A DNA stretch of 64,000 nt, from NCBI GenBank assembly GCA_964035545.1, contig OZ037766.1:29762640-29826639 (forward strand), in the 5' to 3' direction. The DNA is from Bugula neritina (Eukaryota; Animalia; Bryozoa). This document shows positions 3,382 through 63,891 of this stretch, piece after piece. Below the pieces are notes generated by a model. The model was not told the DNA's origin. It searched no databases and saw only the letters and a program-made list of their open reading frames with translations. Each line of letters opens with the position of its first letter. Position 1 is the stretch's first letter. The position numbers and the translations under genes are program-made.

Positions 3382-5468
3382 ATGAGTGAAAAGGGAGACA
3401 GAGTAGCACAAGTGGTTCAATGTCATTCATGGCTGCATGGCTTCACCATCTTTATGTTATGTGGAAGTTTGATAGCCAATGTTGTTATCCTAAACTTCCT
3501 GCTTGATAAATCTAACAAAGTAAGTTTTGAGTATAACTCTATATGATGATAATTCTTTGAGTGTAAAATAAACAATCCTAGAGATTGTCCCAAAACATCA
3601 ATAATGTTATCTATAATATTTTATTGAAAAAAATACGTCTTACAAGTTCTTAGCTATTTATAAAAGGAAGGGCTGCAATTACATGAATTGAATTTTTAAA
3701 GCTATATATAAATACGTTTAAAACTTTTTCTTACAGTGTGAGTAATCAAGTGTAAGTACGTATATATGTCTCTTTTACTGTATATAAGTAAACACATGTT
3801 TCAACTGTGTGCAGTTGTATGTATCAAGTGCATGTAAGTGACTATGTTAATAGAATAGGTAAGTTTTTGTCAACCATTATATAATTTGCTAATCCTGCAG
3901 GTATGTTTTAGAATGATCAGCAGCTGCAGGGGTTTGTGTCACAGAACAGACAGACAGTAGAGAATGAACACTTTGTAAGTGTGACCTGAAATATTTTAAA
4001 TAGCTCAATTGTTGAGCTTTTACTTGAGTGTACTTTTTATGCTTTTATGTATATAATTTCATACATTATTGATTTCAATGTATATTTTCAATTATTTTTG
4101 AGTAAAAGAATACACGAATGCTTTTTTACTTATAAGCCTAATTAAAAACTCAGTTTATCATAAATTGCCATTGTAAAGTTTAGTATAACTTTAGTTTATG
4201 CTTGCATTCTATGCAAATTTATGTTAATTTTAAAGGAGAATTGGGGAGATATAATTACTTAAGCCACAAAAATGATTACATGGCGGTATACCAATTTTTA
4301 TTGTTCTATTTACAAGTTACTCATTCATGTATTCTGAATTGTTTGCACTTGTATTTAGCTGACAAGAAAGCAGGTCGTTGTATTTAAAATGTGTTAAACT
4401 ACAAACCCTTACGGTAAATGAAGCTACAGCAAGCAATTTCAGAATCTAGTTTATTATTTAAAACTTAGTTTCTAAAAACTATTCAAAAATTTAAGATAAA
4501 AACTTAATAAAAAGCCTAAATATATTCTTTGCCTTTAATTTCATTTGCATTAGTACAATGTAAGCACTGCCATTATAAGTTGGAGAATGTTTTTGAAAAA
4601 CTTTATAACGGCTTACAGTTTCAAAAAAACAAAGATTTGTTTTAGTAAATGTAAAGTTTATTAGTCAACTATTAAGTAGCCCTCACCCCTCCCCTCTCTT
4701 GTGTTTACCCTTACAGAACACAAAAGTTGGTTGAGCTTTAACGCTATGGTTTTGTTTTAAACTGTAAAGTATAAAGCATGTATTTAAAAGATGTAAAAAA
4801 CGAATTTCTATAAGTTTTTTCACAATTTTTAGAGCAGAGTCAAGAGAAAAGCCCCTCCACCGTGTACATGCCCAGCCGGGCCTCGTGGACCTCCTGGCCC
4901 ACGCGGACCACATGGCCCACCTGGACCACAAGGTTCGATTGGACATCCTGGTGCTCAAGGACCTGCAGGTCCAGCTGGACCAGCCGGAACTCCTGTAAGT
5001 AAATAAACTATATATAACTATAGGACTATATGTACTTACTGTGGTATTCAATGTTTCCAATACTTACACCTATTTGAATTGTATTAGTAAACTGTTTCCA
5101 TTGTTTGCTGGTGGTGAGCTTTATAATAGTGGCATGTCACAAGAATTTTCAAAACAAATGCATTCATCAAAATTTACCTGGTATTATATGCATAGGGCCA
5201 ACATGGTGCAGTTGGTCCAATGGGACCGAAAGGAGACAAAGGGGACCAAGGATTTAAGGGAGATAGCATTATAGGGCCACAGGGTCTGCCTGGGTTACCT
5301 GGTACTCAAGGTGCGCAAGGTGCTGCAGGAATTCCAGGGCAACAAGGAGAAATGGGATCAGCTGGATTGCCTGGTTTCGCTGGCTTAAGAGGTCGCCCTG
5401 GTAGAAATGGGAAAAGAGCTCCAAGAGGAAGAAATTCTTCCAGAAATAGACGAAGAAATAGAAAATAA
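3382..5468 (+). CDS. Collagen gene A copy 1: short type II transmembrane (MACIT-like) collagen, 211 aa, 4 coding exons
   Basis: Coding exons 3382-3519 ([46 protein letters not shown]), 3912-3974 ([21 protein letters not shown]), 4833-4994 ([15 protein letters not shown] + 13 Gly-X-Y), 5196-5468 (7 Gly-X-Y, GDSII, 16 Gly-X-Y, basic tail, TAA). All introns GT-AG, phase 0, frame open throughout. Probable non-coding first exon ends at donor 3017. Confidence 0.88.
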
Positions 5469-8400
5469 CTCAACACACTAATTTTGTCTAGTTTCAAGAT
5501 ATATTATATACAGCACATGGCAGATTATCTTCAAGATAGATTCACATTATGGCAAAATGTTACAAAAACAGTTTATTTACTTTTTTAATTAATATGTGCA
5601 TAATCCCACAGATCTTTGTTATCTAATATTCTGTTTTTGAAATATGCTTAGATCACCAAACTATATATACGACTTTAAAAAGTGGTTCTCGTCTATTTTC
5701 CTCATTTTCTACATGATTTTACTTTGAGATGAATCTAATTTATGCTGTTACTGTGCAAGCAAGTGTTATGATAAGCTGCTATAGTTAGCTTGATATTTTT
5801 ATATAATGAGTATATTGCTTTTTGTTCTTGTGAATTCTAGCTGTACATATTACCTTTAAAAGTCCCTAATCAGCTCTTCTAAGACTATAAGCTAAGCAAT
5901 AAAATTGTATATTTCAATCGTCAAAGTTTAAACTCATTCCAAATATCCTAAAATATCAGCCTATATAACTTTATTCACATTTATAGACTGTTTGTTTCAA
6001 CTCATGACGGGTGTTGTCTCTAACAGCTAATATATTATCTCAGACAATACTTATCTTATACTGAGGAGGTGATAAGGCGCAGTTTTATGGAAGTGACCAG
6101 GTCAAGTTGCATTTAGACAAACTTGACAAACTTTTCAAATATAATTTATGCTGGTGTTTGTATCATTATGCAGCTCAGCGGATTTCTTGTCTTCCAATCT
6201 ATTCAAGTGTAACATTATTTTCTCTTGACATTGATATGGTGAGAACTGCCAGGTGCTTTACTGAACCAAATGTTTGAATTAATATTTATCTTGCAAAGTA
6301 GGATAGTTGAAGACTTTATTACTGAGTTTGTATTCTTTGTTGGTTTAAATCAATCACTATATATTCTGTTGGTTAGAATGTTTTTTATTTTTTGTAAATG
6401 ACTCTGCTTCATTCTATGCATGTATTAGATAATTCTAGAGAATTCTGTATATCATTAGCAGTTTCTCATGTATTGATTGGCTGAATTTTTTCTGAACCTC
6501 TCAAAGTGTTTCATGTAACAAAGTTGTATTCTGTTTCTATAAAATTACATGGTAATACCTTAAATATATCTTAATTGATCCTTAAATTACCGCTGTAGCA
6601 TTAAACATAGTTGGATGTTTAAACAGGTTGCACTTATTTTTTATATTCATTGAATGCTGCCCAATGACAAGGTAACTGGGTGCCCTTTATCCTTCTGCGT
6701 GTGTTGTGTTTCTGGATAATACAATGCTGCCCATGAGAAAGCAATTCCTAAACAAAATTCAGGTGTCAAAATTACCTTCCAGCCTTGCTGCAACTGATAC
6801 GAACATAGCTTCATTGTATCAATCTAATGCACTGACCGCAAGTATTACCAGGATCCATGGCAGGTAGTTTTCTAATCACCAATAGAAATTGGATAGTTCC
6901 AAAAATCATTAGTTTGCAGCAGTTAACACTGTTTCATATTTTAGTAACTGATAAGTAAACCTAATTCTTTCATTCATAAATAGTTATGCATATAATTAAA
7001 ATAATTAGATGTATTGTAAAGAATAAACCGTATAATACCTATAAAGACAGAATAATGCCATTAGGCAATATGAAAACTATTTCAATTTGCTACAATAAAT
7101 ATACTACAAACATAGAACATATTTTACAGACTTCAAATAAACAACCTTACTCACCTTAGTATTTGTTATAGGTCTCATGTTATATGAAGCTTCTCAAGAA
7201 AGAAAAAAAAAGTGTAAATAAAGCATTTCATGCAACTTGGAAACAAATTAGAATTCAGTGTAACTGACAAAAATATGCACACGCAGAACTGGTTAAAACA
7301 GTGTTTTACAATGGTCACAGACGCTTACTGTACAGACATTGCTATCTTTTGCTTTCAATTAACATAATATTATGTTAACATCTACTTTTCTAATAAATAT
7401 TATAAACTTTGTTCAAGTAGATTTGCCAAATATGAGTTATGTTTCAAAAGAATATATAAATTGTATATTACATTAACTATATATATAAGCCTATAAATTG
7501 TAATTATTAATAGGCCCAATAAAAACTTATAACAGGTGAGCCCAGAAAAGTTATGGAAGCTCAGAAAGCTGACAATTTTCTTTATAGCTGTCGTATACAG
7601 TTTCTATTGCTCAGCGGAAATATATAACTTTCTTAGTACTAGTATTTCATTAAAATAAAAATTTGGTAATCAGGACTGCTTATTGTATATAATATTGGGC
7701 ATGCATATATATATATTTATATTTATATATACTTATATTTATATTTATAATGTATTTATATATACTCATATTTATATTTAGCCAATGGCTATTTTTGGTC
7801 TTGACATCATATAGCAGTCTTCCAATTTCAAATCATTACAACTGCAACTAATCTTAAACTTGAATGCCATTTAGTATTTATAGCCAACTAAACCATAAGA
7901 ACTTCTGCAGAACTATAAACTATACCTGTAATGTTAAAGTATGGACAAAACATGTTTTGAACAATTATAGACTAATTACTGCAAAAAACTGCTTTCAATA
8001 ATAGATCGACATTTTACAAGCCTGCAGCAAATCTAATAATTGTTACTTTAATATGTAGCGTACTATATTTTGCTTTGTTAAAAATAAATTATCTGACTAA
8101 AGCTCGCCTTGCATGTGCATTGATTTATTGTTATTAACGCATTCGCTTTGGGTTTTAAGTAAGTATACTGTTTCAATTTGGGGTAAAATTAAACAAATTA
8201 GAAACGCTAACACACTGCTCTCAGACATGAATTGTCATTATCATGTTATGTAGTAATAGTAATTTTATGTGTTTGTACCTATATAAAATGTACACCTATT
8301 ATTAAAAGACTATAAATAGTATTTAATAAAATGTTATTCAAACTAGATGTGAAATTAATAACACCAGGTGGAACCTAGTAATCAAATCATATAAAAACAA

Positions 8401-63300: not shown

Positions 63301-63891
63301 TAAATGGATTAAATGGTGTAGATGGAGTGGATGGGATGAATGTTTCCAAGGGAGAGCCTGGAGAACCAGGGATTAATGGGATAAATGGGCAAAATGGAAC
63401 ACCAGGAACAGACGGTGCAAAGGGAGATGCTGGATTGCCTGGAAAAGATGGTGTTGATGGAGAGAAAGGCATTAAGGGAGATAGTGGAGAGCCTGGACAG
63501 AGTGGGGGACCAGGTGCAAAAGGTGAAAAGGGAGCTGCAGGAACTAATGGAGTTCCAGGTACTAACGGTAGAAATGGAGCAAAGGGAAGTAAGGGAGAAT
63601 TTGGAAATGCAGGTTTCAATGGTTTAAAGGGAGATCAAGGACCCGTTGGGTTACCAGGTACAGATGGCGTAAATGGTGTCAATGGGGAGAAGGGAGTTAG
63701 AGGGCCAGCTGGTGTACCAGGGGTGGCAGGTGCTAAGGGAAATAAAGGTGCAACTGGAGCTCCAGGTGTTAATGGAGTTAATGGTGCTCTAGGAGCAACT
63801 GGTGTTGCTGGAGAAAAGGGAGAGAAAGGAGCAGTTGGAGCACCTGGAATCAATGGCATAGCTGGCTCGGGCGGGGAAAAAGGAGAAAAGG
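60349..63891 (+). CDS. Collagen gene C: longer type II transmembrane collagen, 3' end beyond window
   Basis: Exons 60349-60381 ([11 protein letters not shown], tentative), 61074-61217 (alternative start ATG 61098; [27 protein letters not shown]), 61960-62040 ([27 protein letters not shown], amphipathic), 62543-62662 (ERTKR...[14 protein letters not shown]), 63000-63891 (99 triplets in register, one Val at a Gly position, probable phase-1 donor at 63892). Confidence 0.82.
60868..61047. repeat. (TA)n microsatellite within a gene C intron
   Basis: ~180 bp with one interruption, ending ~25 nt before the acceptor at 61073. Confidence 0.96.

Follow-up and report, generated by a model that had tools for sequence, protein, structure and literature searches.

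A tandem cluster of short collagen genes with a predicted membrane-anchored, convertase-cleavable N-terminal module in the bryozoan Bugula neritina

Results and Discussion

The window analysed here, a stretch of 64,000 nucleotides from the bryozoan Bugula neritina (NCBI GenBank assembly GCA_964035545.1, contig OZ037766.1, positions 29,762,640 to 29,826,639 of the forward strand), contains a cluster of seven apparently intact genes for short collagens, all on the + strand. We consider it probable (roughly 0.6) that these are real, selected short-collagen genes and that their N-terminal module serves as a membrane-anchored folding and release device. From their predicted sequences we read the cluster genes as a new short version of a known design and not as members of the MACIT or the nematode cuticle-collagen family, because the C-terminal motif of the MACITs is absent and the Pfam family Col_cuticle_N is not matched by any single exon.

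Gene structure

Genes were located by a six-frame scan for Gly-X-Y runs and by self-BLAST, and the splice sites were checked by hand. Five of the seven genes belong to type A, one to type C and one to type D; together with three relics this agrees with the first-pass annotation, which had counted seven apparently intact genes of three subtypes plus relics. For exon coordinates see Table 1. A self-comparison revealed the type A unit at about 3.0, 13.0, 23.7, 33.5 and 54.6 kb. The near-identical copies originate from recent tandem duplication with a unit length of ~10 kb. An eighth intact gene, type B (201 residues), is located about 6 kb upstream of the window (C2:29755455-29757054, L006:2816-4415; C2 is the contig of the window in the 216-Mb assembly), so the cluster exceeds positions 3382-63891. 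In a similarity search of the genome with exon 1 the family was found only in this one cluster, represented by the five type A genes and type B.

Types A, B and C each comprise four exons separated by phase-0 GT-AG introns, which all read GTAAGT...AG in copy A1. In type D the last intron is in phase 1 with the Gly-X-Y register kept, and the other introns are GT-AG and phase 0; the last exon lies 375 nt past the end of the window (L004:906-976).

In a sliding profile of identity among four type A copies, a peak at the level of the exons lies inside the first intron (95-98% identity between A1 and A5). This peak contains a 63-nt phase-0 exon bounded by TTTTAG and GTAAGT sites. Each of the five type A copies carries this exon, and the copies differ in it at 0-3 of 63 nt. 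Phase-0 counterparts of this linker exon encode 23 residues in type B, 24 in type C and 21 in a long paralogue elsewhere in the genome (L009). The conservation peaks of the profile match the four exons, and with the linker included the lengths of the predicted proteins (211 residues for type A, 207 for A5, 201 for B and 302 for C) are in line with the ~210-310 residues of the first-pass annotation. A three-exon type A model (190 residues), in which RVKR lies merely 5-10 residues past the hydrophobic stretch and the flanking charges are contrary to type II topology, was replaced by the four-exon model with the linker.

Approximately 80 nt of intron directly following the linker exon (window 3975-4056; corresponding positions in the remaining type A copies) are likewise 95-98% identical between A1 and A5, as high as in exons. 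This stretch may be a splicing or regulatory element; an Rfam scan of one gene, introns included, gave no match.

Selection on the coding sequence

The coding sequence (CDS) of the type A copies is better conserved than intron 1. Identities for A1-A4 are 96-98% in the CDS versus 92-93% in intron 1, and the corresponding values for comparisons with A5 are 91% versus 86-87%; A3 and A4 are 99.8% identical in the CDS. The ratio of nonsynonymous to synonymous divergence (dN/dS) is 0.24-0.39 across all informative pairs (0.31 for A5 versus A1), including copies with a dS of about 0.2. Types A, B and C can still be aligned with each other at dS >1.5, where dN/dS is 0.30-0.42. Identities and dN/dS values were computed on three-exon models. 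They indicate that every exon, that of the membrane segment included, is under purifying selection. GT-AG introns, the higher conservation of the CDS and dN/dS values of 0.24-0.39 thus argue together that the genes are real.

All database and family searches were run exon by exon, and joined spliced models were compared in local scripts only. In Pfam the collagen repeat (PF01391, gathering threshold 27.2 bits) was the only family matched, with scores of 33.8 and 57.2 bits for exons 3 and 4 of type A (both exons match in copy A1), 84.3 bits for exon 4 of type C and 167.7 bits for the Gly-X-Y exon of type D.

Architecture of the predicted proteins

Exon 1 encodes a polar N-terminus of 13-17 residues followed by an uncharged, hydrophobic stretch of 28-34 residues. 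Hydropathy maxima are 2.0-2.5 over 19 residues, and a G-x-x-x-A-N core within the stretch is common to types A, B and C. With the linker exon in place, the N-terminal flank carries a charge of +1 to +3 and the C-terminal flank of -1 to +1, which fits a predicted anchor with its N-terminus inside (type II). This places the cleavage site 31-33 residues past the hydrophobic stretch.

Exon 3 starts with S-R-V-K-R (R-H-K-R in type C, R-T-K-R in type D). In types A, B and C the basic site is followed after 4-6 residues by C-x-C, P-A-G-P and the Gly-X-Y repeat; in type D about 23 residues separate R-T-K-R from C-x(4)-C-P-P-G-P. The splice-site reading thus bears out the order given in the first-pass annotation (cytosolic N-terminus, transmembrane segment, linker, R-x-K-R, Cys pair, Gly-X-Y), and the junction strings it had led us to expect, including RTKR-FVQG, are present.

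The last exon continues the Gly-X-Y repeat across a single break of 2-3 residues (SII in A, SYP in B, SLP in C, NVSK in D) and ends in a basic tail. The triplets on either side of the break number 21+16 in type A, 16+18 in B, 15+30 in C and 40+64 in D. A mature type A chain would have 139 residues with 37 triplets, and its 18-19 Lys and Arg residues compare with 3-5 Asp and Glu residues. Beyond the junction, types A, B and D have no cysteine; the tail of type C contains Cys in a Lys-rich sequence that is unrelated to the MACIT motif.

Proposed assembly mechanism

Based on these conserved motifs we propose the following mechanism for folding and release. Exon 1 would act as a type II signal anchor that leaves the N-terminus in the cytosol. 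Three chains would meet in the membrane, where the short linker and the conserved polar residues of the membrane helix (G-x-x-x-A-N in A, B and C) may help. Disulfides formed by the C-x-C pair directly before the first Gly-X-Y triplet would lock the trimer, and the triple helix would then zip up in the N-to-C direction. MACITs fold in this direction too, and their junction disulfides have a role. In the next step a furin-type proprotein convertase would cleave the chain C-terminal to R-x-K-R, about 31-33 residues away from the membrane on its outer side. Cleavage at the equivalent position has been tested experimentally in MACITs (Tu et al. 2015, PMC4678570) and in SQT-3 of C. elegans (Birnbaum et al. 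2023, PMC10538796). The rod freed in this way from types A, B and C would comprise 34-45 triplets (roughly 30-40 nm), interrupted by a single flexible break and ending in a strongly basic tail; the rod of type D would be longer, with about 104 triplets. Most likely the freed rods would join the extracellular matrix of the body wall or cuticle, with the basic tail binding to anionic matrix.

Types A, B and C all end in a tail of this basic kind, and such conservation makes a role for it probable, binding to anionic matrix being one example. The tail holds further dibasic sites and might be trimmed off instead. Gene structure, conservation, motifs and the homology of the module with longer paralogues are read directly from the sequence. 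Each step of the scheme, from topology and trimer nucleation to cleavage, is deduced from conserved motifs, and tissue and role are its most tentative parts. The bulk secreted material proposed in the first-pass annotation would be a guess, and by exon 1 similarity the family comprises just this one cluster.

Observations that weigh against the proposal

A number of observations count against the proposal of real genes with a membrane-anchored module. The topology is predicted from crude hydropathy and charge counts, and an uncharged stretch as long as 28-34 residues would also be compatible with a cleaved signal peptide. Constant inclusion of the linker exon is a prediction from the genomic sequence, and in type D the linker is an uncertain candidate of 11 residues. 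Copy A2 has Glu at a Gly position of the helix (14665-14667; GPR-EPP-GPR) together with a GTGGGT first donor (13557-13562); it may be in early decay and on its way out. The sole public run matching a 6-kb test stretch consists of DNA contigs in which introns and exons are covered evenly, and hence it provides no splice evidence. For types C and D, protein database searches with the large last exon gave no close match.

The searches with these last exons returned generic collagen similarity, namely bacterial collagen-like proteins, MARCO, otolin and nematode cuticle collagens. Exon 1 gave no usable match in the ESM Atlas. In metagenome scans the exon 1 frame had no match, and the frame of the junction exon matched only generic collagen repeats that left the furin site uncovered. 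An exhaustive profile search built on the A, B and C junction exons recovered the RxKR...C-x-C junction in none of the best 150 matches, the query being swamped by long collagens with many repeats. A description of these bryozoan genes was not found in literature searches.

The hydrophobic N-terminus could instead be a long signal peptide. The products would then be ordinary secreted mini-collagens with a propeptide removed by furin, and nucleation in the membrane would not take place. The N-terminal region of 13-17 residues is short enough for this, the mature product would be identical in either case, and about a third of the C. elegans cuticle collagens have a normal signal peptide (PMC10538796). 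The uncharged stretch, however, is far longer than the usual core of a signal peptide, and the homologous exon 1 of the long paralogues precedes a coiled-coil-like stalk, as in type II collagens. We regard a signal peptide as unlikely on these grounds and retain the predicted membrane anchor.

Comparison with nematode cuticle collagens

Nematode cuticle collagens are mostly predicted to be type II proteins with a consensus furin site, and both the convertase BLI-4 and the furin site are required for secretion of SQT-3 and DPY-17 (PMC10538796). The cluster genes resemble them in size (about 300 residues), in the predicted type II anchor, in the RxxR convertase site, in the C-x-C before Gly-X-Y, in short interrupted helices and in their organization as tandem multigene families. 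In the nematode N-termini the order of elements is hydrophobic stretch, spacer, R-x-K-R, C-N-C, an extra Cys and P-x-G-P. When the bryozoan junctions are aligned with those of four nematode cuticle collagens, no variation is seen in the P4 Arg, P1 Arg and first Cys and almost none in the second Cys and P-x-G-P. An RxxR site with a Cys cluster directly before the first Gly-X-Y block, a feature of cuticle collagens, is thus found in the cluster as well.

These likenesses raise the question whether the cluster genes are homologues of nematode cuticle collagens, a spiralian branch that builds a collagenous cuticle layer. A comparison of the joined N-terminal module with 11 nematode N-termini by a local profile-profile script yielded a score of 53 over 65 collinear columns, compared with 40 over 13 Gly-X-Y columns for MARCO and at most 16 for column shuffles. 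With the cysteines and the collagen part removed, the module scored 24.6 with a probability of 40%. Exon 1 alone reached a probability of 6% against the nematode N-termini (hhalign), exon 3 aligned over C-x-C only, and none of the exons matched Col_cuticle_N (PF01484) at E-values up to 10. We take the similarity of the N-module as a weak signal above the controls and not as proof of a relationship.

The first-pass annotation had named an already described family with the same architecture as what would speak against its proposal. Such an architecture is indeed known in nematode cuticle collagens (PMC10538796), which speaks in part against that proposal; membership by sequence does not follow from our comparisons. 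The two groups also differ in several respects. The spacer between membrane and cleavage site is shorter in the cluster genes, and types A, B and C do not have the extra Cys that precedes the first P-x-G-P in the nematode proteins. A Cys cluster past the last Gly-X-Y block is typical of nematode cuticle collagens, whereas types A, B and D have no such cysteines. The host of the cluster is a spiralian, unlike the nematodes, and the bryozoan cuticle is a chitin-protein material. Taken together, direct homology with the nematode family appears improbable, and a short version of a shared design is our preferred description.

Comparison with MACIT collagens

Three features define the MACITs, namely type II topology, interruptions in the collagenous ectodomain and a conserved motif at the C-terminus that carries two Cys residues, and a survey of 2015 found none of these collagens in Lophotrochozoa (PMC4678570). 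In human XIII, XXIII and XXV and in C. elegans COL-99 a basic site is followed after a few residues by C-x-C-P-[PAG]-G-P; the junctions in the supplementary alignment read RRRR-EAPKTSPG-CNCPP for human XIII, RIAR-EAPSE-CNCPAGPPG for XXV and KSRRVR-NS-CMCPAGPPG for COL-99 (PMC4678570). The first-pass annotation had described this combination of furin site and C-x-C-P; it is correct according to the published alignment (PMC4678570), and the type A junction is alike.

The annotation had further called the cluster MACIT-like, which holds for three features. The proteins have a predicted type II topology with one uncharged stretch (hydropathy and flank charges, a crude measure). Their collagenous ectodomain is interrupted, with one break of 2-3 residues per protein, and a juxtamembrane furin site is followed by C-x-C-P-x-G-P. 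In both groups the motif C-x-C-P-[AP]-G-P stands within a few residues of the furin-type site at the first collagenous domain, and by analogy both would fold from N to C and shed their ectodomain. The likeness does not extend to the C-terminus. The motif GLDAPCPxGxDGLPxxGCW is absent from all cluster genes, in which a polybasic tail takes the place of GLDAPCP...GCW. The cluster proteins are also shorter (200-300 residues, about 400 for type D, versus 540-720 for MACITs), they are encoded by 4 exons versus many, and multiple tandem genes contrast with one MACIT gene per invertebrate genome. The part next to the membrane is a linker exon of 21-24 residues in the cluster genes, whereas MACITs have a clear NC1 coiled coil; a giant paralogue of the cluster genes has a clearer heptad-like stretch.

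A search of the whole genome with a degenerate pattern for the MACIT C-terminal motif gave one match, and a reversed control gave none. The match is the last exon of a collagen gene with many exons on contig C1 (C1:29989622-30002820; L017, and L015 around 1480-1560) and reads GIPGLDALPCPIGKDGLPACG. About 13 kb upstream of this exon an open frame (L016:8368-8484) reads SRQQR-SPTKN-CLCPAG; the transmembrane exon of the gene was not located. The C1 gene seems to be the canonical MACIT-like gene of this genome, and the cluster, to judge from these sequences, something else.

This bears on the alternative that the cluster genes are true MACIT members, shortened duplicates of the MACIT gene of the lineage and thus membrane collagens with adhesion or synapse-like roles. 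The anchor, a furin site followed by x(2-8)-C-x-C-P-[AP]-G-P, and the interrupted helix would fit, and breaks similar to the S-I-I-G-P-Q-G break of type A are seen for XIII, XXV and COL-99 in the alignment of that survey; the type A string occurs in 0 of 390 other collagen-like proteins compared. Against this stand the absence of the defining two-Cys motif, with types A, B and D lacking any C-terminal Cys, the short linker, and the existence of a better MACIT orthologue in the C1 gene, which carries both GIPGLDALPCPIGKDGLPACG and an RQQR-SPTKN-CLCPAG junction. True membership of the cluster in the MACITs is therefore distinctly unlikely.

That the cluster is silent or decaying duplicated DNA and the models are not expressed genes would fit the DNA-only public run, the lack of database proteins for types C and D, the relics and the Gly-to-Glu change and weak donor of A2, but it is highly unlikely given seven frames intact over four exons each, exons more conserved than introns, dN/dS values of 0.24-0.39 even at a dS of about 0.2, and types A, B and C that remain alignable at dS >1.5 with dN/dS of 0.3-0.4.

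Long and giant paralogues

A search of the genome with the junction exon also matched longer collagen genes. In a long paralogue on the contig of the window (C2:33081104-33084175; L009:2105-3157 onward) a first exon of 45 residues (short tail and transmembrane segment, phase 0) is followed by a linker exon of 21 residues. Its third exon starts with QRVKR...ACTCPPGP and comprises 742 residues, and further collagen exons are located downstream. A giant paralogue (C4:17045532-17046386; L008:2533-3387) has a transmembrane exon, a coiled-coil-like (heptad-like) stretch, RRKR and ACACPAGP at the start of an open frame of 3466 residues. These genes have in common with the cluster a homologous first exon (phase 0), a linker exon and RVKR or RRKR followed by C-x-C-P-[AP]-G-P. 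They differ in the helix, which comprises 742 to >3400 residues in a single open frame versus 34-45 triplets in types A, B and C, and the coiled-coil-like stalk of the giant paralogue is longer than in the cluster genes. Since the module is common to both, the small genes represent the short end of one family with very different helix lengths.

Contig C8 contains dozens of short collagen-like exons at many places (e.g. 241608-4272226), with open frames of 71 residues that match the junction-exon query. They are a separate, large collagen-like family.

Evolution and implications

The first-pass annotation had suggested that the architecture would be older than assumed if the host were non-bilaterian; the host is a bryozoan and hence bilaterian, so this idea does not apply. 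A different possibility, which we put forward tentatively, is that the cassette of cytosolic tail, transmembrane segment, stalk, RxKR, C-x-C and P-x-G-P is one ancient bilaterian module for membrane nucleation and release, which MACITs, cuticle collagens and the bryozoan family would have by descent, with helices from about 35 to >1000 triplets. The small genes could then be the spiralian counterpart of cuticle collagens, derived from a MACIT-like ancestor. If so, bryozoans would adjust the length of their rods within a range of two orders of magnitude while relying on a single assembly device.

If the cluster genes are expressed, very short, membrane-nucleated and convertase-released collagens would not be restricted to nematodes but would also occur in a spiralian, beside a canonical MACIT-like gene and giant paralogues with the same module. 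They would provide a series of natural length variants built on a single mechanism of collagen assembly, and also a data point on the relationship between MACITs and cuticle collagens. The C1 gene looks like a canonical bryozoan MACIT, in contrast to the 2015 survey of Lophotrochozoa (PMC4678570). With about 70 residues ahead of the helix, the minimal module could be of interest for the design of recombinant collagen trimers.

Other features of the window

The window is AT-rich (28-34% G+C) and abundant in microsatellites. Long bacterial-type reading frames were not found in it.

Table 1. Collagen genes and relics in the window. Positions refer to the window; those of type A copies begin with the ATG.
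Feature	Position	Strand	Exons and remarks
Type A copy 1 (211 residues)	3382..5468	+	3382-3519 (N-terminus and transmembrane segment), 3912-3974 (linker), 4833-4994 (RVKR, CTC, PAGP, Gly-X-Y), 5196-5468 (Gly-X-Y, SII break, basic tail, stop)
Type A copy 2 (211 residues)	13419..15246	+	13419-13556, 13943-14005, 14611-14772, 14974-15246
Type A copy 3 (211 residues)	24094..26219	+	24094-24231, 24623-24685, 25587-25748, 25947-26219
Relic of type B last exon	27373..27594	+	In-frame stop; matches residues 109-176 of the 178-residue three-exon B model at 62% identity (tblastn)
Type A copy 4 (211 residues)	33844..35967	+	33844-33981, 34371-34433, 35335-35496, 35695-35967
Type C gene (302 residues)	37264..39892	+	37264-37401 (transmembrane segment), 38345-38416 (linker), 38670-38771 (junction and Gly-X-Y), 39296-39892 (Gly-X-Y, Lys-rich tail with Cys)
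Relic fragment of type A last exon	41902..41985	-	Self-BLAST and tblastn
Degenerate B-like collagen fragment	47616..47791	+	tblastn
Type A copy 5 (207 residues)	54593..56710	+	54593-54730, 55092-55154, 56050-56193, 56432-56710; most diverged copy, RVKRR, exon 3 six residues shorter
Type D gene (about 400-411 residues)	61098..63891	+	61098-61217 (transmembrane segment), 61960-61992 (possible linker, uncertain), 62543-62662 (RTKR-FVQG... and Cys junction), 63000-63891 (about 297 residues of Gly-X-Y); incomplete in window

The stop codon of the type C gene is directly followed by AATAAA. Ahead of the ATG, the homology of the A5 unit with the remaining type A units covers just 24 nt (from window 3358), and in several family members AG immediately precedes the ATG. 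An upstream 5'-untranslated exon or differing promoters seem likely.

One transfer RNA (tRNA) gene for Gly, tRNA-Gly(TCC) at 43851-43923 on the - strand, is located within the collagen cluster. Among the Gly codons of the collagen genes GGA is the most frequent (124 of 308), and the position of the tRNA gene is probably a coincidence. Very long (TG)n and (TA)n microsatellites were observed at 49816-50950, 45094-45432 and 60733-61092, the longest of them spanning about 1.1 kb.

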